64,000 nt of DNA, taken from positions 124,001-188,000 of IMG/VR virus record IMGVR_UViG_3300019458_000020; one strand, written 5' to 3'. This document shows, in pieces, positions 1-58,606 of this stretch; the first letter of the stretch is position 1, and the number at the start of each line of letters is the position of its first letter. The notes beneath the pieces were generated by a model. The model was not told where the DNA came from. It ran no database searches and worked only from the letters and a program-made list of their open reading frames with translations. Made by a program: the position numbers and the translations under genes.

Positions 1-1344
1 TCTATATGCTTCGGAACCAGAATATTCAAAAATTACTCTATCTGTAGGCGCACCAACTACAGCAGTGTCTCCCCAAATACTAACGGAATATCCAAATGAA
101 TCAGTTCGAGAACTTGTATAGGATGCAGAAACTTGAGGATATACAGTGTCAAAATTTAATTGATATAGATTCAAGTCAGGATACAAAGTATATTTTAATT
201 CCCAACCAGAACCAGTTGTATATTCATAAACAAATGCTAATGATGCACTAGGTTTGAGTGAACCTATTATCATACTTCCAGTAAATGAACCTGTGGCCTT
301 ATTTAATTCAATAGAATGACCAAAGTAATCACGAGTACCTATTCCCAATACAGAACTTCCACTAATAACTTGCTGTAACGACCAACTAGCATCATTACCG
401 AATGGTCCTCCACTCTTCTTATACATGTAAACGGCGCCAAACTGATTAAGTTCGTAAATTGAGCCGATGGCTAACCACTCATCGTTTATAGATACCGAAT
501 ATCCGAATGAACCTGTTAATGTTGGATTTGGATTTTGTATTGTTACCAAATATGGATTGGTAGAAACTATTCCACTTACTCTAATATTCGGAGCAACATT
601 TGAGTCGGTATTAAGAGATGCCGTAACTATATATCCGATAGTAGTAGAATCAGAGGTTATAGTGAACACCACATTTCCACCATCACTGGTAACAGGAGTA
701 ATTTGCAATTTCTGATATGGATTGGATGATGTAATAAATCTACCTTCCAATAAAGCGAATCCAAATCCTTGTCCTCCGGGAACAAATGCGGTAATATTTG
801 CTACAGTGGCCGAAGACGTTGTTACGGAAGTTATGAATGGATTAGAAGTGACAGCAAATGGGTCAAGATTTAATTTAGCTAAATCAAATAAGCTCACTTC
901 TCCTGAACCACTAAATACAAACGATGCCGTGTCAATCAAAATTTCACTTCTAAAGTATCTATTTCCTACTGCTAACAAATTTCTATTTAAATCAATTGCA
1001 TGACCATAATCATCTTCTGATGCAGTGAAATATGTTCCGGGGTCGATAATAATATCTAAATCGGATGTAAGAGGAACCGTTCCGGTTAATTCGGTATGAA
1101 GAATTTGGTCGGTTTCCGTGGTCAACCAAACAAATTCTGCAGCAGAAATAGGTCTATAAATCGTTGTTTTTAAATCGTGACTATCTCTATTAAGATTATA
1201 TCTAAAAACTTCCAAAGAGCCTGTTTGAGATAAACTTGCTGAGGCTGCTAACCATCGAACGGTTGCCGGATTTCCTACCACAGCCCATCGGTCGTAACAT
1301 GTAACGGTCGAACCGTATCCTTCATTATGTATGTTCGATATCAT
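1..1344 (-). CDS. FG-GAP/beta-propeller-like repeat virion protein, 3'-truncated by window edge
   Basis: Manually translated open frame from ATG at 1344 (MISNIHNEGYGSTV...). Repeated blades such as EDDYGHAIDLNRNLLAVG, EWLAIGS...FGAVYMY and YFGHSIEL. Absent from the ORF track because its stop lies outside the window. Confidence 0.6.
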   Translation of the reverse strand, partial: MISNIHNEGYGSTVTCYDRWAVVGNPATVRWLAASASLSQTGSLEVFRYNLNRDSHDLKTTIYRPISAAEFVWLTTETDQILHTELTGTVPLTSDLDIIIDPGTYFTASEDDYGHAIDLNRNLLAVGNRYFRSEILIDTASFVFSGSGEVSLFDLAKLNLDPFAVTSNPFITSVTTSSATVANITAFVPGGQGFGFALLEGRFITSSNPYQKLQITPVTSDGGNVVFTITSDSTTIGYIVTASLNTDSNVAPNIRVSGIVSTNPYLVTIQNPNPTLTGSFGYSVSINDEWLAIGSIYELNQFGAVYMYKKSGGPFGNDASWSLQQVISGSSVLGIGTRDYFGHSIELNKATGSFTGSMIIGSLKPSASLAFVYEYTTGSGWELKYTLYPDLNLYQLNFDTVYPQVSASYTSSRTDSFGYSVSIWGDTAVVGAPTDRVIFEYSGSEAYR

Positions 1345-24280: not shown

Positions 24281-25771
24281 TTAAGCAAATGGTATCCACG
24301 AACTTGATATATCTGTTCTAATAGGAACGGAAGATAGAGGAAATCCTTGAACAATAACCGATACCGTAAAGAAATTGGCTATAGCCGGCAAACTGACTGT
24401 AGTTGCATAGACTACATCCCCAACGGATAATCCTGATGTAGATGCTGAAAAGCTCGCACTCAAATATCTTGACCCGGACCAGAAATTACAAGATGCCGAT
24501 ACGTATCCTGCCGACAATGCACCTGCAGTCACCGAAAAAGGAAGAATATAATTTCTTCCGTGATTACCATTTTTATTTCCATGAAAATTATATACCGCAC
24601 CTACGTGATTCATTGACGATGTTGGAGCAACCATAATTCCCTGAACAACCTCTTTATCAGAATGAATGATAGCTTTTAATGATTCGCTAGCAGGATATAA
24701 CCATTTTTCATATTGATTATTATCTATCGATGCACTGAAATTTTCTGGAAGAAGATAAAGTCCTGTAGCTTGTCCAACATCTGTACTACTATCATTTCTG
24801 TGTGCTCTATCGGATAATAGTATCGTATCTCCCAAACTAGGTGGAATATACATTCTATTGACCACCCACATAATATAACTTCCTGCAGCAACATTATCTT
24901 TCTTGAACATTAAGTTGTGACAATAATTATGAACAAATGTTATGGCATTGTCCGTACCATTTACTGATCTATATCCTTGAAATAATTTATAGTCATCCGC
25001 AGTTCCTAATCTATCATTATATGAAGCCGTTCTATATATTCCAGGTGCAGAAGACTCGGTTATAGGCAACCATCTTACTTCTACGGTTGTAAATCCAACT
25101 GGAGGACTAGTTCCATCACATCCTAAAACAGCTCTCATAAAAACTACTATATCTGTGTCGTTTTCTGTTACAATAATAGGGACGCCTCTTTCTGTTGGAT
25201 CCGTCCAGCCCCACCTAGAACTTGTAAATCCACTTGCAGTAAATGGACCAAAAACTTGTTGAAAATTAATATCCGTTTCTGCCAAATTAATATATGATGC
25301 GGTGATTGCTAAATCCGACTCAAGTGTATAAGTTGATACAGGTGCGGAAGGAGTAAATAAAGCATAAGAAGTAGAAAATACATTACTTGTACTTATTGCC
25401 AATTGAGCAAATGACGCTGTATCTACTAGAGACGCTGTTATAGATGTTAATGCAAACCCACCCCCCAATGTATTTGATGAAGATATTGCAAATGATGCTG
25501 TACCGTTTGTTGGAGTTGTATTGTTTATAAATAATCCAACAGATGAAGTAAATACCGAACTAGCTGTAGCAACAAATGATGAAGATACAGAAAATAATGA
25601 AGAACTTGCCCAACTACCGGATGCAAACGAACCACTCAGAGATGTCCAATTATTAAATGTAAATATTGTAGCTTTTTTGGAAGTCAATGATCCACTATCC
25701 ACAACATACAAGAAATCATTTCCTGTTGATGAGGTTATAGAGGCCGTTAGTTGTGATATCGTCGTTGGCAT
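24281..25771 (-). CDS. Tail fibre/receptor-binding-like protein (paralogue 1 of 3)
   Basis: N-terminal ISQL..GNDFLYVVDSG, ASYA/ASFA repeats and FGPFTASG..WGWTDP..GVPI shared with neighbours. Confidence 0.55.
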   Translation of the reverse strand: MPTTISQLTASITSSTGNDFLYVVDSGSLTSKKATIFTFNNWTSLSGSFASGSWASSSLFSVSSSFVATASSVFTSSVGLFINNTTPTNGTASFAISSSNTLGGGFALTSITASLVDTASFAQLAISTSNVFSTSYALFTPSAPVSTYTLESDLAITASYINLAETDINFQQVFGPFTASGFTSSRWGWTDPTERGVPIIVTENDTDIVVFMRAVLGCDGTSPPVGFTTVEVRWLPITESSAPGIYRTASYNDRLGTADDYKLFQGYRSVNGTDNAITFVHNYCHNLMFKKDNVAAGSYIMWVVNRMYIPPSLGDTILLSDRAHRNDSSTDVGQATGLYLLPENFSASIDNNQYEKWLYPASESLKAIIHSDKEVVQGIMVAPTSSMNHVGAVYNFHGNKNGNHGRNYILPFSVTAGALSAGYVSASCNFWSGSRYLSASFSASTSGLSVGDVVYATTVSLPAIANFFTVSVIVQGFPLSSVPIRTDISSSWIPFA

Positions 25772-25774
25772 AAA

Positions 25775-27259
25775 TTATGGATTTCCTATAATTACAAATG
25801 AACAACTCTCATTCGTGCGTATAGGTACAGGAGACAAAGGTATTCCACTCACTACGACGGATGTAGTCCATCTATTTGCTACGGCTGGTAATCCATCCAT
25901 GAAAGCAACTGCAACATCTCCTAAAGATAATCCGGTTGTTGGAATACTTGCTGAAGCACTATGGCTAGCCGATAAAACATTAGAACCAGACATATACATA
26001 AATGATGCTGAACAAAATCCTAAACTTAAAGATTGACTATTGACTAAAAACGGAAATGCATATACTCTTCCGAATCTCCCGGCGTGCCTTCCACCAATCA
26101 AATTATTGTTTGATACAGATGACGTAGAAGCAAACATAATTCCTTGTTGAACTTCTTTATCAGCATAAATTAATGTACGAACGGAACCACTTGTATATTG
26201 AATCCATTGATGCAATGAATGGTCAGGAGTTTCATTTGGTAGGGCAGTATCTACTAATACATCCGGAAAAGATTCTCTGAACATACCACTTTCTAATGGA
26301 ACTTCGATTTCTTGTGCATTAGAATCTTCTGGAGAATCAACACGATATCCTTTATTTTCTATCCAAAGAATATGATTTCCTCTATTCAGTGTTTTTCTAA
26401 AATATAATTTTACAGAATCGGCGACTAAACGATTAACGTCATTTAAACATGGCATCAAAGGAACATAATCTTCCGAAGAATCTAATGATTCAGTATATGG
26501 CGAACGAGGAAAAATATAATCGCCAGCAGAAGAAGTAATATTTCTAAATCTGGCTTCAATCGTGTTAATTGAAAAATAACCACCTTCTCTATTATCTCCA
26601 CGTCCACTAATTTTAACTGTTATATCAAATAATACATTTGTTCCATCGTTTAATACCATAATAGGAACACCTTGAAATAATGGGTCTGTCCAAGACCAAG
26701 GAGAACCAGAATGAGCACTTGAAGTAAATGGTCCATACCAAAGTGGAATTCCTTGAGCTAAATCTAAATTAATATATGATGCAGTTTGTGCGTGCTTGGT
26801 ATAATTTGTAGTTGATGCGGTGATTGTATTTTTTGTTACTTGAGAGAATGAAGAAGATACAACATTGCTTGCTGTTTTTGCTAATTGAACGAACGATGCA
26901 GTATTTGCTAGAAATGAACTATTTGCTCGGTCTATTACGGAACCTGTTCTAGCATACGATGAAGTAATTGCCCACCATACTGTACCGTTATTATCCGTGC
27001 CATTATAATATAAAAATAATCCTACTCCTGCATTTATTGCATAACTGGCGGATGGGTTAAAGGATGTGGTGACAGCAGTAAATGATCTACTTACCCAACT
27101 TGCACTTAATGCCGAACCACTGTTTTGAAACCATGTATTAAATGCAGATAAAGACGTTCGGAATGTTTGCATTACCGAACCACTATCAACTACAACGATA
27201 AAATCGTTGGATGATATATTTACTATTTCATTTAGTTCGCTGACTTTTATATTTGCCAT
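25775..27259 (-). CDS. Tail fibre/receptor-binding-like protein (paralogue 2 of 3)
   Basis: MANIKVSEL..NDFIVVVDSG; YGPFTSS..WSWTDP..GVPI; ADKEVQQGIMFA. Confidence 0.55.
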   Translation of the reverse strand: MANIKVSELNEIVNISSNDFIVVVDSGSVMQTFRTSLSAFNTWFQNSGSALSASWVSRSFTAVTTSFNPSASYAINAGVGLFLYYNGTDNNGTVWWAITSSYARTGSVIDRANSSFLANTASFVQLAKTASNVVSSSFSQVTKNTITASTTNYTKHAQTASYINLDLAQGIPLWYGPFTSSAHSGSPWSWTDPLFQGVPIMVLNDGTNVLFDITVKISGRGDNREGGYFSINTIEARFRNITSSAGDYIFPRSPYTESLDSSEDYVPLMPCLNDVNRLVADSVKLYFRKTLNRGNHILWIENKGYRVDSPEDSNAQEIEVPLESGMFRESFPDVLVDTALPNETPDHSLHQWIQYTSGSVRTLIYADKEVQQGIMFASTSSVSNNNLIGGRHAGRFGRVYAFPFLVNSQSLSLGFCSASFMYMSGSNVLSASHSASASIPTTGLSLGDVAVAFMDGLPAVANRWTTSVVVSGIPLSPVPIRTNESCSFVIIGNP

Positions 27260-27262
27260 AAA

Positions 27263-28747
27263 TTACGTTGCTACCCAAGAACTACTTACATCTGTTCGAA
27301 TTGGTATTTGTGATAGTAATGCTCCTTGTGTAACAGATAATACTTTCCAATTTGTAGCCACACTCGGAATCGACCCTAAATATGCTACGACCATTGCATT
27401 TTCTGTCGAACCAGCAGACGCTGAAAAACTTGCTGTATAAATAGATGATGCACTTGTATAGGTAAATGATGCTCTACAATTTCCATTAGAAATTGCTCCA
27501 GCAGTAACTAAAAATGGTAAAGCATAAACTCTCCCAAATGACCCGGCAAACAATCTTCCTATAAAATCGTATCGTGGAGACGGACTGCTTCTAAATGAAA
27601 TTGACGCCGTTGGTGCAAACATAATTCCTTGTTTTACTTCATTGTTGGCGTAAACAAGAGCCTTTACAGAACCACTGGTAGGCCATATCCAACATTCCAA
27701 CTCTTCATCACTAGAAATAGATGGTGCTTGGTCATAAAGATAATATTGAGATGGTATGGCATCACCACTACCATTATAATATGCTCGATCGGTGACAATA
27801 TTTCCGATAGTTTTATTTGATATAAATGCTTTTCTCGTTACTCTCGAATAAAACCATAAAATATAACTACCTCTTTTTACTCCGGTTTTTTTAAATGTGC
27901 TTGTTAGTGTATGATTATACGAAAAATAAGAAGGACTCCAACTCATTATATACTGAAAATCGTCCGACGTTCCTACTACTTCCGATGTAGATGGAATATC
28001 ATATACTCCAACGTTTGTAGATGCTGAGATGGGTTTCAATCTTACCTGTAACGTATGTAATCCACCACTACTATCTGCATCATTCATTATATTGCATGTC
28101 GCCATTATTGTTATGTCTGTATCATCATGTAATACACAAATAGGAATTCCTCGTTCTATTGGATCCGTCCATCCCCATTTTGAACCAGAGTAACCACTTG
28201 CTGTAAATGGTCCATACCACTTAGGAATATTTGTTGAAAAAGTGCCCAAGTTAATATACGAAGCAGTTTCGGCAAAAGATGAAGTTTTAACGAATGAAGC
28301 AGTTTGTGCTAATAAGGTCAATAAAGAAAATGATGATGATAACACAAAACTTGCACTATTAGCATTTATTGCTAAAGATGCACTAGTTGCAATAGATGCA
28401 CTGACCGCATTAATAGCAACTGAACTTGTGTGTGCCCACGATGAAGATACGGCATTAGATGCTGTACCATTGAATCCACCATCATATTTTAAAAATTCTA
28501 TAAATGAGGATGTTTTTGCATAACTTGCCGACGGAATATAAGAAGCCGACGTGGAGTTTATAGCAAATTGAGCTAAACTTGCAGATAATACCGAACCACT
28601 CAGAGAAAAGAATCCATCATTTAAAGATTGAACCGATACTCTAAATGTTGTTAAAGAAGGCGCAGACCCGCTTTGAACAATTACTAAAAGGTCATCCCCA
28701 GTAATTGTTGTTAATGTCGCTAATTGACTTATTCTTATCTGAGCCAT
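27263..28747 (-). CDS. Tail fibre/receptor-binding-like protein (paralogue 3 of 3)
   Basis: MAQIRISQL..GDDLLVIVQSG; YGPFTASG..WGWTDP..GIPI; C-terminal PIRTDVSSSW. Confidence 0.55.
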   Translation of the reverse strand: MAQIRISQLATLTTITGDDLLVIVQSGSAPSLTTFRVSVQSLNDGFFSLSGSVLSASLAQFAINSTSASYIPSASYAKTSSFIEFLKYDGGFNGTASNAVSSSWAHTSSVAINAVSASIATSASLAINANSASFVLSSSFSLLTLLAQTASFVKTSSFAETASYINLGTFSTNIPKWYGPFTASGYSGSKWGWTDPIERGIPICVLHDDTDITIMATCNIMNDADSSGGLHTLQVRLKPISASTNVGVYDIPSTSEVVGTSDDFQYIMSWSPSYFSYNHTLTSTFKKTGVKRGSYILWFYSRVTRKAFISNKTIGNIVTDRAYYNGSGDAIPSQYYLYDQAPSISSDEELECWIWPTSGSVKALVYANNEVKQGIMFAPTASISFRSSPSPRYDFIGRLFAGSFGRVYALPFLVTAGAISNGNCRASFTYTSASSIYTASFSASAGSTENAMVVAYLGSIPSVATNWKVLSVTQGALLSQIPIRTDVSSSWVAT

Positions 28748-37124: not shown

Positions 37125-38207
37125 TCATTGTTTATAATCTACGTTTAAAATTTTGACCGATAGTTGTCTTCCAAGAACAGAAGAATAACGTGGTTTACAC
37201 GGTCGAAGAACGATTCCCTCTCCGTTATTTTTTCCATACTTAAAATTATTAGCAATTTCCTGTAGTCGTGCTACATTCCAAGTTTCATCTAAAATAAAAC
37301 AGTCTCCAATTTGGTCAACTGTTGGAATATCCAATATTGCACAAGTCAACACAATTTGTCCCCAATCGAGCCATGCGCCATTGTCCAAATCACGAATATT
37401 GAATACACGGAATGATTTTTCCGATATTTCCATTTTGTTTCCCTGAATGGTTGGTCCAACGGCCTCGGCCTGAATTGCAATATTTCGATTGAACTTGGTC
37501 AGTTTCTCAACCAAATTTAACTTATTCACGATTGACCAAAACCCCGTTCCTTCTTTTTGTTCTAGTTTTCGGCTACAAACACGAACCTTTCCATCTTGAT
37601 AAATGATAGTACAAGAACTACCATCGGCCTTGCCTGTGATATAACACAAATCGCCACGAAGTTCATTCAATACTTCATCACCATAATTTAATAGATTGTG
37701 TTCATCCGTCATTGGTATAAGATTTGTTGGAAAATTACCTACTGCTTCAGAACTAATTGGTTCTGGCTTTTCGTATTTGATGATACCAAGAATTTCAGTA
37801 ACGTCGTCGCCCTCCTTTAGATTAGCGATGTTTTTTTCAACTTGAAATACCTCATTACCAATTTCTTTTGAATTTTTAAGAAGAATATCACACGGACATA
37901 CCAATCCCTGAGATGGTGCCCCTTTGAATCTACAATTCCAGATCCGATACTTTTGACGTTCCAAAAAAGAAAAAAATGGATTGGTAGAAGGAACAATGGT
38001 GTCAATAGTAATAAAAACAACCAAATCACCTTCTTTGAATTCGCCTTTCTTGATAACGACCGGCCATTCTTTGATTTTGGCTACCTCTAATCTTTCAACC
38101 TCTTTATTAGGATGTGGTTGAATCAAGTGGATTCTTTGAATTGTTGCTAAATTTTTCATTAGATGTATAAAATTTCGTCGGTTTTTACTAAAAAATATTG
38201 ATAACAA
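37125..38207 (-). CDS. RNA ligase, DRB0094 (Rnl2-like) family; start probably MKNLATIQ
   Basis: LATIQRI...PHP..ERLEVAKI..W.VVIKKGEFKEGDLVVF; motif I ITGKADGSS; AEAVG..IQGN; GEGIVLRP; VKILN. Confidence 0.88.
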   Translation of the reverse strand: MLSIFFSKNRRNFIHLMKNLATIQRIHLIQPHPNKEVERLEVAKIKEWPVVIKKGEFKEGDLVVFITIDTIVPSTNPFFSFLERQKYRIWNCRFKGAPSQGLVCPCDILLKNSKEIGNEVFQVEKNIANLKEGDDVTEILGIIKYEKPEPISSEAVGNFPTNLIPMTDEHNLLNYGDEVLNELRGDLCYITGKADGSSCTIIYQDGKVRVCSRKLEQKEGTGFWSIVNKLNLVEKLTKFNRNIAIQAEAVGPTIQGNKMEISEKSFRVFNIRDLDNGAWLDWGQIVLTCAILDIPTVDQIGDCFILDETWNVARLQEIANNFKYGKNNGEGIVLRPCKPRYSSVLGRQLSVKILNVDYKQ

Positions 38208-39208: not shown

Positions 39209-39284
39209 TGGTAGCGGATAAAAGAATCGCACTTTTCTAAAAATGCTTATGAGACATTCCAGTTCACTAGAACTGTAATCCGCA
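39209..39284 (-). tRNA. trnM: tRNA-Met(CAT)
   Basis: AATGT CTCATAA GCATT; 1:72 mismatch; TGCGATT T-loop; CCA. Confidence 0.8.
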
Positions 39285-39302: not shown

Positions 39303-39331
39303 ATAATACACTCGAACAAATCGATTGTCAA
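39303..39331 (-). promoter_or_regulatory. Sigma70-like promoter TTGACA-17-TATTAT
   Basis: Direct read; immediately upstream of two Met tRNAs. Confidence 0.7.
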
Positions 39332-39780
39332 ATCAAATTCCAGAGAGTTTTTAAAGATTCATCTGGTGTTTGACGGGTAGTGTTGATAGGTATAAAATTC
39401 TCCAAAGGTTCTTCGAACTCTTTGCAGTGGAAGGATTCACGGCCACGAACTTCGTTAGTATAAACATAAATTTCTTTTATACCAAATTGAGATTTCTTGA
39501 ATTTTTCTCTAACTTCTCTATAAGGATTTACTGTTGAAATGATGACACAAATACCTTGGTTATTAATATGTCTTACTAAATTTTGAAGTATTTCAGTTTG
39601 TTGAATTCTATATTCTTTGGTAAAATTTTCCTTATTGTAAGAATTACCAAATATTGTTCTAAGGTCGTCTCCATCGAGATGAAGAATCGTATCAGACCCT
39701 AACGCTTCGAATGCGTTTTTTAATTTTTTAGCTAATGTGGTCTTTCCACAACCAGGCTGACCTATGAACCAATATATCAT
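39328..39780 (-). CDS. cysC: Adenylyl-sulfate kinase (CysC)-like P-loop kinase
   Basis: IYWFIGQPGCGKTTLA; LDGDDLR; ISTVNPYREVR; FEEP. Confidence 0.75.
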   Translation of the reverse strand: MIYWFIGQPGCGKTTLAKKLKNAFEALGSDTILHLDGDDLRTIFGNSYNKENFTKEYRIQQTEILQNLVRHINNQGICVIISTVNPYREVREKFKKSQFGIKEIYVYTNEVRGRESFHCKEFEEPLENFIPINTTRQTPDESLKTLWNLI

Positions 39781-39804: not shown

Positions 39805-40368
39805 TTATTTTTTTACAAAATCGATTTTATTCCAATCATCCATTCTTGCACTTAATCCATCACAAAGATGCAAAATCCAAGCAACTTTTGTGTTCGGAGA
39901 AACCGGACTTCCCCATTCTCTATGTCCGTGGTGAGCTAAAATTGCATGTAAAACCGAGTCGTGATATTTTGATTTTACTTCGGGGAAAGATTCTACAGCG
40001 TGACTCCACATTAAAGCCGAACGAGAGATATGATGAATCATTCGTTTATGAACTGTAGGGCCCCAAACGTTAAAATCTTTCTTTTCATAATCATGAATTT
40101 TTCCAACATCATGATACAAAGCAGCAAGAAACAATTCCACGTCATCTACATCTTTTAGCTTTAAAGTTTCTTTGGTAGAAAAACAAAGACGAATAACTTC
40201 TAATGTGTGTTCGGATAATCCATTATCACGATAATGATGATGGTCTGATTTTGCACTTCCCGACCATGTTTGGGGTCGATGGTCATGTAATACATGATGT
40301 ATTAAACTAATAACATCACTTGAAAAGTGAAATGTTTTTGCTAAGTCGTATATTTCATCTACAAACAT
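39805..40368 (-). CDS. HD-domain phosphohydrolase, YhaM/Cbf1-like (no OB fold)
   Basis: HHHY..GLSEHTLEV; LYHDVGKI; ILAHHG..EWGSPV.P; LHLCD.LSA. Start reset to 40368 because the longer ORF overlaps tRNA-Ala. Confidence 0.85.
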   Translation of the reverse strand: MFVDEIYDLAKTFHFSSDVISLIHHVLHDHRPQTWSGSAKSDHHHYRDNGLSEHTLEVIRLCFSTKETLKLKDVDDVELFLAALYHDVGKIHDYEKKDFNVWGPTVHKRMIHHISRSALMWSHAVESFPEVKSKYHDSVLHAILAHHGHREWGSPVSPNTKVAWILHLCDGLSARMDDWNKIDFVKK

Positions 40369-40380
40369 AAAATCAAATCT

Positions 40381-40454
40381 TGGTGGAGCCAAAGAGAATT
40401 GAACCCTTATCTATTCATTGCGAATGAATCATCCTCCCGTTGAACGATGACCCC
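40381..40454 (-). tRNA. trnA: tRNA-Ala(CGC)
   Basis: TT-CGC-AA loop; G3.U70 present; CCA. Confidence 0.92.
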
Positions 40455-40457
40455 ACA

Positions 40458-40748
40458 TTGATAAACTAAAAGTATAGCCGCGGTTCTGTTATTTCAATCA
40501 AACATTTATCTCAGATTTTCATCTGGTTTCTTACTAATAGAAACTGCTCCAACCTTGTCTTGATACCGAATAACTCACATTCTCAGACTTTTTAGGATTG
40601 CTGCGGATTTGTGGTAATAACGCAATTCAACTCTTTATAGACTCGGCCCGGACTCCGAATTGCTCCCAAACAACGAGTTAAGCAGCCACGAACTTCCTCT
40701 AATCACAGGTTTTACTGTGACCAGCGTTTGATTCTTTTAATCAATCAA
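40458..40748 (-). ncRNA. rnpB: Ribonuclease P RNA (compact bacterial-type)
   Basis: CR-I GAGGAAGUUCGUGG and CR-V AACAGAACCGCGGCUAUA form P4 with the bulged U. Also P2 AAUCAAAC/GUUUGAUU, P3 UGGUCACAG/CUGUGAUUA, P5 CUGC/GCAG, P18-like CAGAU-GAAA-AUCUG followed by AGAUAAAUG, and a terminal P1. Confidence 0.85.
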
Positions 40749-40932
40749 AATTACAAAGAACTTTATCTGTTCATCCATTTACAATAAACGGCTATAGGCC
40801 AAAATAGTAAATGAATAAAAAAACTACAAATCATAACATACCACGTCTTATCAAAACGATAAGTTTCATACATGGCAAATATACACCATAACATACCAAA
40901 AGTCAAATAGATTAATAATAAGTTCATAAAAT

Positions 40933-50422: not shown

Positions 50423-50496
50423 TGGTGCTCAGAGCCAGAATCGCACTGGCAAAACACACTTATCGGGTGTGCAGTTTACTATTAACTTATCCGAGC
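50423..50496 (-). tRNA. trnI: tRNA-Ile(GAT), T-loop TGCGATT
   Basis: CACAC CCGATAA GTGTG; CCA. Confidence 0.82.
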
Positions 50497-52077: not shown

Positions 52078-52154
52078 TGGAGCAACATGTGGGTAACGCT
52101 CCCACTCGGTATTCTGCTTGGAAGGCAGACGCCTCACTTCTCGGCCAATGTTGC
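52078..52154 (-). tRNA. trnG: tRNA-Gly(TCC), T-loop AGCGTTA
   Basis: TCTGC CTTCCAA GCAGA; CCA. Confidence 0.85.
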
Positions 52155-53857: not shown

Positions 53858-53931
53858 TGGCGAGCGTAAACGGTTCTGCCCCGTTGCATTCCGATAGACA
53901 GTCGGATAGGCTTCTATTACATCATACGCCC
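53858..53931 (-). tRNA. trnD: tRNA-Asp(GTC), T-loop GGCAGAA
   Basis: TCCGA CTGTCTA TCGGA; CCA. Confidence 0.82.
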
Positions 53932-54506: not shown

Positions 54507-54580
54507 TGGTAGGAGAGGCCGGTTACGCTCCAGCGCCAAGACTTTGTAAGAGTCCCAATCTACTATTAATATACTCCCCC
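54507..54580 (-). tRNA. trnV: tRNA-Val(TAC), T-loop AGCGTAA
   Basis: GGACT CTTACAA AGTCT; CCA. Confidence 0.8.
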
Positions 54581-55953: not shown

Positions 55954-56028
55954 TGGTCAGGTAGATGGGACTTGCACCCATACAGTTTCCTTCACAGGGA
56001 AAGATGCTACTATTACATCACGTACCTG
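55954..56028 (-). tRNA. trnH: tRNA-His(GTG) lacking G-1:C73
   Basis: TTTCC CTGTGAA GGAAA; A73 with T encoded at -1; TGCAAGT T-loop; CCA. Confidence 0.8.
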
Positions 56029-57456: not shown

Positions 57457-57530
57457 TGGCTGGGACGGCTCGAATCGCACGAGCATCATGCGGGTAACAG
57501 CCGCAGGTCCTACTGTTGAACGACATCCCA
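57457..57530 (-). tRNA. trnN: tRNA-Asn(GTT), T-loop TGCGATT
   Basis: TGCGG CTGTTAC CCGCA; CCA. Confidence 0.85.
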
Positions 57531-58248: not shown

Positions 58249-58337
58249 TGGTGGTGCCGGTGGGAGTCGAACCCACGGTGGATTATTAATCGTCGGATTA
58301 AAAGTCCGGTGCTTTCGGCCTCTAAGCAAACGACACC
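58249..58337 (-). tRNA. trnK: tRNA-Lys(TTT) with long variable arm
   Basis: CCGGA CTTTTAA TCCGA; GATT-AAT-AATC extra arm; CCA. Confidence 0.85.
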
Positions 58338-58529: not shown

Positions 58530-58606
58530 TGGTACCCCAGGTAGGAATTGCACCCACTATTCTCTACGTTCGAAGCGTAGCATGATTCTATTATCACCAC
58601 TGAGGC
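58530..58606 (-). tRNA. trnR: tRNA-Arg(TCG), T-loop TGCAATT
   Basis: CTACG CTTCGAA CGTAG; CCA. Confidence 0.85.

Follow-up and report, generated by a model that had tools for sequence, protein, structure and literature searches.

A likely RNase P RNA gene of bacterial type A descent, with a reduced specificity domain, in the tRNA array of a jumbo myovirus-like phage

Introduction

RNase P RNA is not known to be encoded outside cells and organelles, and two 2024 reviews are silent on any such case. The sequence-only reading of the locus described here had advised a search for earlier reports of viral rnpB. No account of an RNase P RNA encoded by a phage turned up in the searchable literature, which does not cover subscription-only papers, and the sole earlier viral example is the RNase P-like RNA of orthopoxviruses (camelpox), a virus-encoded RNA whose resemblance to RNase P RNA had attracted notice and which showed no cleavage of pre-tRNA in vitro (PMC3001073). 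Theta (HDV-like) ribozymes, which are phage-encoded and linked to phage tRNA genes, have been proposed to take part in tRNA maturation (PMC10879173). Among cellular RNAs, those of CPR bacteria fall below the Rfam thresholds and lack some peripheral helices, so that lowered cut-offs are needed to find them (PMC8172020). Reduced RNase P RNAs are also represented by type T and by engineered catalytic-domain RNAs; these are about 200–250 nt long, come from archaea or are man-made, and function with archaeal proteins.

Here we describe a locus which is likely to be a genuine RNase P RNA gene of bacterial type A descent, residing in a jumbo myovirus-like phage, and which is inferred to form a hybrid enzyme with host RnpA that would act on the phage pre-tRNAs. 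Its catalysis is inferred, and we have no data on activity, expression or RNA ends.

Results

Identification of the locus

The window, that is, the whole 64,000-nucleotide stretch that was analysed, is part of a phage DNA whose contig is 251 kb long in IMG/VR; in a metagenome assembly it reaches 341 kb (Ga0187893_10000017). An RNase P RNA had been proposed on its minus strand at 40458-40748, and this assignment held: the gene is 291 nt long and the coordinates correspond exactly to the first and last bases of P1. Infernal searches with the Rfam RNase P models had been suggested as a check, and they gave a significant full-length match to the bacterial type A model RF00010 at 40459-40743 (44.1 bits, E 1.9e-12, in a search of 601 nt), with an alignment spanning model positions 1-367 of 367. 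The score lies below the RF00010 gathering threshold of 100 bits, which is therefore not met. The match was not reported in a scan of the whole window or of 28.5 kb; it is lost once the scanned DNA exceeds about 1 kb, as the speed filters of Infernal remove such RNAs in long scans. A family model built in the present analysis, R1, matches 40458-40754 with 163 bits, the window sequence having been in its training set. When 40458-40748 was folded as a single sequence, P1, P3, the P17 hairpin and P18 were recovered, P3 in the minimum-free-energy structure. The quality of the match and the order of the elements at this locus are far beyond chance.

A family of related RNAs on viral DNA

At least 130 related RNAs of about 200–410 nt are present on viral contigs, 18 of which are longer than 200 kb. 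They include one in the published 484-kb huge-phage record LR756508.1, which has gone unnoticed because such RNAs fall below the Rfam cut-off and are removed by the Infernal speed filters. The RF00010 scores of relatives reach 45–58 bits, while relatives with a canonical P4 exceed the cut-off at 100.8–170.9 bits, which hints that culture collections may already hold some carriers. The lineage of the window is characterised by the P4 form GAGGAAG[U/C]UC. One exact-pattern scan of 185,579 bacterial and archaeal species, each represented by one genome, did not find this variant; its sole match was a chance occurrence within a coding region. When viral DNA was first scanned with a loose P4 pattern, 120 loci were obtained, mostly by chance, with nhmmer supporting only L027, and the family model later recovered about 10 further loci among these 120. 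Searching the GenBank phages by blastn yielded only tRNA matches with the locus itself and only bacterial contigs filed among phages with two canonical-P4 relatives. One relative, L144, whose 5' half appears chimeric, was excluded from the alignments.

The viral origin of the family was judged by the presence of virion-protein genes on the same DNA and by recurrence on viral contigs, and this criterion is met, with more than 130 IMG/VR contigs in addition to LR756508.1. Baseplate wedge and gp25 genes lie in the window and have homologues in cultured Microcystis and Flavobacterium myophages, and a portal protein gene adjoins the relative L078. The nearest cultured relative by baseplate protein, Microcystis phage Mel-JY01, has no such RNA; it carries one tRNA only and no array.

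The catalytic domain

The elements of the RNA and its immediate surroundings are listed in Table 1. The type A criteria met at the locus are a bulged-U P4 flanked by GAGGAA (J3/4) and ACAGAA (J2/4); P1, P2 and P3 at the 5' end, pairing with the 3' end; a P6 formed between J5/7 and the P17 loop, which distinguishes type A from type B; and P5, J5/15 (GCAA, its AA invariant) and P15 with an internal loop carrying GGU. The P4 consists of 5 bp, one bulged U and 3 bp, with compensated swaps, and the P4 of E. coli is of the same size (5 bp, one bulged U, 3 bp). The GGU motif, which binds the 3' CCA of tRNA, is carried by the L15 loop AGGUU and is invariant in 24 members. Indeed, the catalytic-core motifs and the L15 GGU account for exactly the columns that do not vary among these members. 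P18 is absent from some relatives.

Table 1 Elements of the RNase P RNA and flanking features in the window, in 5' to 3' order of the RNA
Feature	Position	Strand	Remarks
Possible promoter TTGACT, 17 nt, TATATT	40878-40906	-	10/12 matches; ~130 nt upstream; consensus scan only
Conserved leader AGUUCUUUG	40754-40762	-	just upstream of P1; kept in at least 12 relatives
P1 5' strand UUGAUUGAUUAAAAG	40734-40748	-	pairs with 40458-40472; 15 bp, one U-U mismatch
P2 5' strand AAUCAAAC	40726-40733	-	pairs with GUUUGAUU at 40496-40503
P3 hairpin CUGGUCACAG, loop UAAAAC, CUGUGAUUAG	40699-40724	-	high posterior probability alignment to model P3
J3/4 and P4 5' strand GAGGAAGUUCGUGG	40686-40699	-	includes bulged U; invariant in 24 members
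P5 5' strand CUGC	40682-40685	-	pairs with GCAG at 40601-40604
P6 pseudoknot 5' strand AACUC	40675-40679	-	in J5/7; pairs with GAGUU of the P17 loop, 40572-40576
Specificity-domain remnant: P7-like helix (UUUGG with CCA(C)AAA), GGGAG, one hairpin (40623-40662), joiner CGUUAUUA	40608-40670	-	
J5/15 (CAA), P15 (UCC with GGA), L15 AGGUU, P16 (GUCU with AGAC), P17 hairpin (GAAU with AUUC)	40548-40600	-	
Extra hairpin	40526-40544	-	
P18, CAGAU-GAAA-AUCUG	40512-40525	-	GAAA-capped; J18/2 directly after
J18/2 AGAUAAAUG	40503-40511	-	AGA..AAUG motif invariant
J2/4 and P4 3' strand AACAGAACCGCGGCUAUA	40473-40490	-	pairs with 40699-40686
P1 3' strand CUUUUAGUUUAUCAA	40458-40472	-	ends 3 nt before tRNA-Ala
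tRNA-Ala(CGC), encoded CCA	40381-40454	-	starts 3 nt after RNA end

The catalytic domain is complete, comprising P1-P5, the P6 pseudoknot, P15-P17, P18, J3/4, J5/15, J18/2 and J2/4; catalysis itself is inferred. The sequence-only reading had quoted conserved elements in order on the minus strand, with a P4 pairing that includes the bulged U, P1, P2, P3, P5 and a GAAA-capped P18-like hairpin, and all of these held, each quoted element lying where that reading had put it.

Covariation

Selection on the structure was assessed in two kinds of alignment. In a plain, unfitted MAFFT alignment evaluated with RNAalifold, 18 of 23 pairs keep pairing through two-sided changes. Five of the 6 pairs of P2 have changes on both sides in 5–8 sequences, the base of P3 covaries, and each pair of P5 shows 4–11 compensatory changes. 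In the model-based alignment of 29 members, 96.9% of cells are paired versus 75.4% in shuffles, and the covariation score is 0.565 versus 0.142 in shuffles, a value reached by 0 of 500 shuffles, with slid registers giving at most 0.09. Compensatory changes occur in 15 of 19 pairs. Helix by helix, P4 is 100% paired in the 29 members with 4 covarying pairs, P5 is 96.6% paired, and P15 and P16 are 93–95% paired with covariation in all 7 pairs. Furthermore, 98 additional members contain more than 12 compensated variants of P4, at positions that the search pattern had left free.

P1-P3, P6 and P17 were tested through RNAalifold and through duplexes of cognate and non-cognate strands rather than by model-based pair counting. 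Cognate P1 strands from 18 members have a mean duplex energy of -12.3 kcal/mol, compared with -4.75 for non-cognate strands, and the corresponding values for P6 are -7.47 and -5.48 kcal/mol; in both cases 0 of 5000 permutations reached the cognate value. The P6 partners of other members include AAGCA/UGCUU, AAACC/GGUUU and CUGCU/AGCAG. Base pairing is under selection, with strong covariation in P1, P2, P3, P4, P5, P6, P15 and P16.

The specificity domain

In the RF00010 alignment, about 73 nt stand in place of the roughly 140 model positions that make up P7-P14. A full specificity domain, with P7-P11, P12, P13/P14 and the J11/12-J12/13 module, is not present, only P7 and one hairpin being left. 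P7 covaries by eye (GUGG/CCAC, GAGG/CCUC, GUAG/CUAC), and the length of the hairpin in relatives varies between about 10 and 140 nt; some relatives, such as L152, retain more of the domain. The phage RNA has lost most of its specificity domain, the reader of the tRNA elbow. A compact RNA of about 290 nt with a divergent specificity domain had been predicted, and both parts were confirmed, the RNA being 291 nt and the domain reduced.

The tRNA array

The RNase P RNA gene lies among 38 tRNA genes of the window, on the same strand, and essentially all of them encode CCA. Rfam found 35 of these genes and ARAGORN alone the other 3; the sequence-only reading had counted about 49, which failed. If RNase P cuts at the 5' end of the tRNA-Ala, the RNA would keep a 3-nt tail. 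Throughout the family, nearly all members are co-oriented within tRNA arrays and often abut a tRNA; the number of co-oriented tRNAs at a locus has a median of 9 and a maximum of 36. Where a downstream tRNA was available (25 members), it starts no more than 20 nt away in 21, with a median gap of 1 nt. There is an enrichment of encoded CCA (73% versus 37%, p 2.5e-4), and divergent phages have the RNA at the same place, between the same tRNAs.

Upstream of the RNA, the conserved leader AGUUCUUUG occurs a single time on the minus strand of the window. Promoter-like sites in the region are not more numerous than in shuffles, and no convincing promoter was found directly upstream in the window. The relatives L027, L131 and L147 have TTGACA-N16/17-TATAKT directly upstream of the RNA. 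The 8-mer UAUAGCCG, located at 40796-40789 (-), 41-48 nt upstream of P1, had been proposed to inactivate the precursor. Its location was confirmed, but it occurs only in this genome and in none of 22 relatives, and 12 of 500 shuffles match its length; the inhibitor idea was rejected because the 8-mer is not conserved.

The same reading had tied the phage RNase P to tRNAs with non-standard T/D elbows. Such A18/G55 tRNAs are real in the window (8–9 of 38), and their G19 and C56 are unchanged; the G19-C56 pair is the one on which RNase P stacks in the published RNase P-tRNA structure. Most relatives' arrays contain no odd-elbow tRNAs, and a link between the RNA and these tRNAs was accordingly rejected at the level of the family.

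The window also encodes an RNA ligase, a P-loop kinase and an HD phosphohydrolase. The islands of relatives include a CCA-adding enzyme or tmRNA, and tmRNA genes lie in some arrays.

Search for RnpA

A Pfam scan of 42 ORFs revealed no RnpA in the window. In addition, a 141-sequence HMM was run against 15,940 six-frame ORFs, including those of the whole of LR756508.1, and only the E. coli control matched. The flanks of relatives likewise yielded no RnpA gene. This HMM was built from cluster representatives, a first homologue search having given only Enterobacterales, which was too narrow. It leans towards Proteobacteria, and a very divergent or entirely new phage protein could escape it; moreover, the search in the source phage covered only 64 kb of its 341-kb genome. 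The earlier statement that no RnpA gene is visible in the window held.

Discussion

Proposed function

Our results support the core of the sequence-only reading, a compact phage-encoded RNase P RNA with a reduced specificity domain, in a tRNA array and without rnpA nearby, catalysis being inferred. In the mechanism that we consider likeliest, which likewise rests on inference and not on activity data, the RNA would be co-transcribed with the tRNA array and its 3' end would be freed by RNase P cleavage at the 5' end of the tRNA-Ala 3 nt downstream. The RNA would then assemble with the RnpA protein of the host, a partner inferred because no phage rnpA is detectable, and the hybrid enzyme would trim the 5' leaders off phage pre-tRNAs. 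Recognition would proceed via the acceptor stem, pairing of the CCA with L15 and contact between protein and leader, and not via the elbow. The phage would thereby gain a capacity for tRNA maturation that is independent of host rnpB expression during infection, although no need of the phage for additional RNase P has been established. When they lack the specificity domain, bacterial RNase P RNAs are poor catalysts alone, so that function would depend on a protein partner which is itself only inferred. The RNA likely belongs to a wider island for tRNA supply and repair, again by inference.

A bolder reading holds that the RNA is an active, natural miniature ribozyme, consisting of the catalytic domain only, which takes over host RnpA and processes the phage tRNA arrays without reading the elbow. 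We lean slightly towards this reading, with catalysis once more inferred.

Alternative explanations

The RNA could be a non-catalytic decoy that soaks up host RnpA or pre-tRNAs and so throttles host tRNA maturation during takeover. In its favour, the window, the relatives' flanks and LR756508.1 yielded no phage rnpA, the specificity domain is truncated, and the sole earlier viral RNase P-like RNA, that of orthopoxviruses, is inactive in vitro (PMC3001073). However, conservation extends beyond the likely protein-binding surface to parts that serve docking and chemistry (the bulged-U P4, J5/15, the L15 GGU and the P6 pseudoknot), and the RNA goes together with tRNA arrays. Since the phage's own tRNAs, at least 38, also need RNase P, a decoy that blocked RNase P would hurt the phage. 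We regard this explanation as unlikely.

It is similarly improbable that the RNA is a retargeted RNase P acting on non-tRNA substrates, whether in processing of phage mRNAs or operons, in tmRNA maturation or on host transcripts. Some substrates of bacterial RNase P are indeed not tRNAs, the phage RNA has a reduced specificity domain, whose loss would have loosened the elbow requirement, and tmRNA genes occur within some arrays. Against this stand the location in a tRNA array, the abutting tRNA, a CCA-binding loop that has been kept and an over-representation of encoded CCA, which together indicate tRNAs as the main substrates.

A third possibility, also with little support, is a ribozyme that acts alone or with a new phage protein, independently of host RnpA; it differs from the hybrid enzyme in the partner only. 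No RnpA was found, and many proteins of unknown function are encoded in the flanks of the RNAs. However, no protein gene is conserved beside the RNA across the family, and RNAs that consist only of the catalytic domain need protein for useful rates.

Finally, a cellular origin, as a recent passenger or decaying host rnpB or as a bacterial contig misclassed as viral, can be set aside almost entirely: some canonical-P4 relatives do look like ordinary type A to Rfam, and IMG/VR includes some misclassified contigs, but more than 130 divergent copies keep pairing by compensatory change, the P4 variant was not found in the genomes of 185,579 species, phage structural genes lie on the same DNA, and the RNA occupies the same position between the same tRNAs in divergent phages.

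Implications

If the bolder reading is true, RNase P RNA would become a virus-encoded component of the translation apparatus. At about 200–290 nt, the phage RNAs would rank with the smallest natural RNase P ribozymes of bacterial type, and they would belong to a phage toolkit for tRNA synthesis and repair that keeps working under shut-off of host RNA synthesis or defence attack on host tRNAs. Were the family active, the list of translation functions carried by viruses would gain a ribozyme; dozens of independent natural "deletion mutants" would allow one to probe what the specificity domain is needed for, and very small RNase P scaffolds would become available for structural work and engineering. 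The family would then provide a testable idea for how phages with 30–60 tRNA genes mature their tRNAs. It also exposes a blind spot of annotation, since large phages other than this one, well over a hundred of them, carry such an RNA without annotation.

Comparison with known systems

With bacterial type A RNAs (RF00010; E. coli M1 RNA), the phage RNA shares the order P1-P5, P6 pseudoknot and P15-P18, as well as the motifs GAGGAA...U-bulge P4, GCAA, AGAUxAAUG, ACAGAA and the L15 GGU. It differs from them in being virus-encoded, in lying in a tRNA array without a partner rnpA gene, and in size: bacterial type A RNAs measure about 330–400 nt, whereas the phage RNA measures 200–300 nt (291 nt in the window) and has P7-P14 cut to a P7 stub and a hairpin.

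Type T RNAs of the Thermoproteaceae (Pyrobaculum) and engineered catalytic-domain RNAs likewise lack most of the specificity domain and keep the core. Unlike type T, the phage RNA most likely derives from bacterial type A and has the L15 GGU loop and P6. In a cmscan clan competition with the whole Rfam library, which we take to include a type T model, the bacterial A model came out best, except that some relatives matched the archaeal model best; no score for type T was given. The resemblance to type T is probably one of architecture and not of ancestry. RNAs of CPR bacteria, unlike the phage RNA, are the only copy in their cell, in small genomes; they retain a larger part of the specificity domain and in some cases have no GGU motif (PMC8172020).

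Among virus-encoded RNAs, that of camelpox virus shows a loose similarity of secondary structure and belongs to a eukaryotic virus, whereas the phage RNA lacks none of the core motifs, covaries strongly and lies among its presumed substrates. Theta ribozymes are small and self-cleaving and trim 3' trailers in cis, whereas the phage RNA would be a trans-acting homologue of the universal 5'-end maturase.

A type A RNase P RNA with a reduced specificity domain

On the minus strand at 40748-40458 lies a homologue of bacterial type A RNase P RNA; its catalytic domain is complete and its specificity domain reduced, and we regard its identity as an RNase P RNA as highly probable. All of the structural elements listed for it by the sequence-only reading are present at the positions assigned to them. 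When 601 nt were searched with E-value thresholds, the Rfam type A model RF00010 matched 40459-40743 over model positions 1-367 (44.1 bits, E 1.9e-12). P1, P2, P3, P4, P5, P15, J18/2 and J2/4 were aligned with high posterior probability, and the specificity domain occupied ~73 nt in place of ~140 model positions. The RNA meets all catalytic-domain criteria of RF00010; it falls short on two others, as its score is under the curated cut-off and its specificity domain is incomplete.

The score lies under the Rfam cut-off of 100, and cmscan reports the RNase P match (40459-40743, and likewise relatives L027 and L176) only for inputs of ~1 kb or less. At 28 kb and 64 kb it is dropped even in E-value mode by the speed filters of Infernal, as happened to the match at the window locus in a 28.5-kb scan. 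At gathering thresholds, a scan of the whole window returned tRNAs only, without an RNase P match. The RNA would therefore be missed by routine annotation, and no family in Rfam 15 captures its lineage at threshold.

The window P4 strands can be set in the register of E. coli P4 (5 bp, bulged U, 3 bp); relative to it, the window helix carries two G-C/C-G swaps, one change of A-U to G-C and one of G-C to U-G. E. coli has GGGUA at the position matching the window L15 loop. The gene for tRNA-Ala(CGC) begins 3 nt past the last P1 base.

Features of the window RNA, its flanks and the odd-elbow tRNA genes
Feature	Position	Strand	Sequence, pairing or remark
Upstream 8-mer	40796-40789	minus	UAUAGCCG; upstream of P1
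Conserved leader	40754-40762	minus	AGUUCUUUG; 6-14 nt upstream of P1
P1	40748-40734 with 40472-40458	minus	
P2			AAUCAAAC paired with GUUUGAUU
P3			hairpin of 10 bp
J3/4 and P4, 5' strand	40699-40686	minus	GAGGAAGUUCGUGG
P5			CUGC paired with GCAG
P6 pseudoknot			AACUC in J5/7 paired with GAGUU in P17 loop
Specificity-domain remnant			P7-like helix, then GGGAG, one hairpin, CGUUAUUA; nothing else left
J5/15			CAA
P15			UCC paired with GGA
L15 loop			AGGUU, immediately 5' of P15 3' strand
Between L15/P15 and P18			P16, P17, extra hairpin
P18	40525-40512	minus	GAAA-capped hairpin; AGAUAAAUG (J18/2) directly after
J2/4 and P4, 3' strand	40490-40473	minus	AACAGAACCGCGGCUAUA
HD-domain phosphohydrolase	39805-40392	minus	
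P-loop kinase	39328-39780	minus	APS-kinase/Zeta-like
RNA ligase	37125-38207	minus	
Odd-elbow tRNA genes	39212-39284, 50426-50496, 52081-52154, 53861-53931	minus	
Odd-elbow tRNA genes	54510-54580, 55958-56027, 57460-57530, 58533-58606	minus	

Relatives on large viral contigs

Five different sequences were retrieved from IMG/VR with a 17-mer of the P4 3' strand; the contigs that carry them include ones of 306 and 365 kb. A metagenome scan, in which the pattern comprised J18/2 and the P4 3' strand only, returned 37 stretches and recovered the genome of the window (250,813 bp in its IMG/VR record) as a 340,880-bp contig. The exact P4 5' strand GAGGAAGUUCG was absent from the search pattern, yet it was found 150-300 nt upstream in 28 of the 37 stretches. 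Combined with the IMG/VR sequences, the stretches yielded 24 unique sequences. Searched in 185,579 bacterial and archaeal species, each represented by one genome, the same pattern gave no true match.

A family covariance model trained on 13 compact members added divergent members from earlier viral loci, some with a canonical GAGGAAAGUCC P4. One member lies at ~76,007-76,236 of LR756508.1, a published, unannotated 484-kb huge phage; its score is 59.7 bits under the family model and 49 bits (E 7e-14) under RF00010. Another three specific viral scans gave 117 loci, 98 of which match the family model at 51-221 bits (80 unique sequences). At least 18 carrier contigs exceed 200 kb, the longest reaching 501 kb. 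Because three canonical-P4 members (274-288 nt) exceed the Rfam cut-off, with 100.8-170.9 bits, the family grades continuously from recognisable members to highly divergent ones. On a 488-kb viral contig (L255), the model matched twice, at 1905-2038 and 2369-2611, ~330 nt apart; one match is full-length and the other partial, a possible duplication or decaying second copy.

Selection on the RNase P fold

Purifying selection acts on the RNase P fold, including the active-site and substrate-docking helices. Across 24 members, the columns without variation are those of the catalytic-core motifs and of the L15 GGU. Applied to 18 members in a plain MAFFT alignment, RNAalifold recovers P2, P3, P5, P15 and P16, and 18 of 23 pairs stay paired through two-sided changes. 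In a model-based alignment of 29 members, tested over 19 pairs of P4, P5, P15 and P16, 96.9% of cells were paired versus 75.4% in shuffles, with double changes at 15 pairs (105 cells). The covariation score was 0.565 versus 0.142 in shuffles, none of 500 reaching it, and slid registers gave 0.09 or less.

P1 and P6 were tested without alignment because neither could be placed in the nested structure. Mean pairing of cognate strands was -12.3 kcal/mol for P1 and -7.47 kcal/mol for P6, versus -4.75 and -5.48 kcal/mol for non-cognate strands; none of 5000 permutations did as well for either helix. At the four P4 positions left free by the search pattern, more than 12 variants in the expanded set are perfectly compensated, among them GCGA/UCGC, GGGA/UCCC, AGGA/UCCU, ACGA/UCGU, AAGG/CCUU, UGGA/UCCA, CGGG/CCCG and GAGA/UCUC. 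Taken together, covariation, cognate pairing and compensated P4 variants rule out chance and pseudogene decay.

Upstream of P1, the leader is kept across much of the family (L027, L131, L132, L136, L138-L140, L151, L166 and L168) and shares AGUUC with the P4 5' strand; in several relatives it is preceded by a TTGACA-N16/17-TATAKT promoter. The upstream 8-mer, which the sequence-only reading had proposed as an inhibitor of the precursor, is present, but we reject it as a conserved regulator: it is unique to the window's genome, none of 22 relatives having it, and its length is reached in 12 of 500 shuffles. A putative 54-aa hydrophobic ORF (40763-40927, minus strand) spans the gap between tRNA-Thr and the RNA, and the best promoter-like site of the region, 40906-40878, falls within it.

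Genomic context

The window is phage DNA encoding gp25 and a baseplate wedge protein. Identity of the wedge protein is 37-42% to its counterparts in Microcystis phage Mel-JY01 and the Flavobacterium immuto phages and 39% to that in LR756508.1. In one relative, a portal gene adjoins the tRNA array. Mel-JY01 lacks the RNA and has one tRNA and no array. Three tandem window ORFs of 494-496 aa without PHROG match (24281-28747, minus strand) could be paralogous structural or tail-fibre genes.

We found 38 tRNA genes in the window, failing to reproduce the ~49 counted earlier; all lie on the strand of the RNA, with CCA encoded in essentially every one. The window and L027 share the order Ser(GGA), Gln(CUG), Ala(CGC), RNA, Leu(GAG), Val(UAC), Pro(UGG), Val(CAC). 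Across the family, the median is 9 tRNA genes per locus and the maximum 36. Among the first 34 members, a downstream tRNA lies within 20 nt in 21 of the 25 having one in the available DNA (median gap 1 nt), and six members also have an upstream tRNA that near. In the expanded set, the downstream tRNA is about as close (~20 nt) in 27 of the 68 members that have one. Encoded CCA amounted to 73% in RNA-carrying loci versus 37% in the comparison (p 2.5e-4), consistent with the retained GGU loop.

The odd tRNA elbows to which the RNA had been tied are real, occurring in 8-9 of the 38 tRNAs, with T-loops such as UGCGAUU and AGCGUAA. The two sides covary: A18 G19 replaces the usual G18 G19 in the D-loop and G55 C56 the usual U55 C56 in the T-loop. 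These tRNAs score low in Rfam or are detected by only one of two tRNA finders. The enzyme stacks on the G19-C56 pair in the published RNase P-tRNA structure. Since G19 and C56 are intact and most relatives' arrays, some with 12-15 tRNAs, contain no odd-elbow tRNA, there is no specific link between the RNA and these tRNAs.

The RNA ligase, P-loop kinase and HD-domain phosphohydrolase lie inside the array a short way downstream of the RNA and look like a module for repair of RNA or tRNA. With its listed TTG start, the HD ORF shares 12 nt with tRNA-Ala, and the true start therefore probably lies further inside. In one relative the RNA is adjoined by a tRNA nucleotidyltransferase (CCA-adding enzyme; L039:6310-8433), and the arrays of others contain tmRNA genes (L024:376-694; L176:42935-43378, in LR756508.1). 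At window 58249-58337 (minus strand), ARAGORN calls a tRNA-Lys(UUU) with a long extra arm, and Rfam gives a weak tmRNA-model match (31 bits) or a tRNA match (38.9 bits). Pfam searches of small ORFs in the window array found GIY-YIG with NUMOD3, two HNH proteins and PD-(D/E)XK/DUF559 endonuclease domains; homing endonucleases seem to be dispersed through it.

Protein subunit and proposed function

The RNA lies among co-oriented, CCA-encoding tRNA genes, and rnpA is undetectable. PF00825 matched none of 42 RnpA-sized window ORFs, and a search of 15,940 six-frame ORFs from the window, all loci obtained and complete LR756508.1 with an HMM of 141 diverse RnpA sequences found only the E. coli control (E 1.5e-54). 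The earlier statement that no RnpA gene is visible in the window held. The negative is good, not absolute, because the profile is biased to Proteobacteria and the search reached only 64 kb of the genome to which the window belongs.

In the mechanism that we propose, the window RNA would be co-transcribed with the tRNA array, its 3' end would be freed by the RNase P cut at the abutting tRNA, and it would join host RnpA. It would then cleave phage pre-tRNA leaders in trans, guided by the acceptor stem, CCA-L15 pairing and protein-leader contact. We infer, without activity data, that the RNA probably acts catalytically in tRNA maturation; that host RnpA is its partner is also an inference, towards which we only lean. 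The main rival, that the RNA is a non-catalytic decoy, is difficult to reconcile with the evidence, because the phage itself needs RNase P and the substrate-docking and active-site elements are conserved.

Comparison with known RNase P RNAs

In the literature searched, 2024 RNase P reviews included, a phage-encoded RNase P RNA is not described, although an account elsewhere is not excluded. Within that scope, the only earlier viral RNase P-like RNA is that of orthopoxviruses, which bears only a loose similarity and showed no activity in vitro (PMC3001073). For phage tRNA 3' ends, theta ribozymes are comparable in concept (PMC10879173). Thermoproteaceae type T and engineered catalytic-domain-only RNAs would resemble the window RNA in function, by analogy, whereas the window RNA descends from the bacterial lineage. 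It shares the architecture of bacterial type A RNase P RNA and differs by a natural truncation of the specificity domain.
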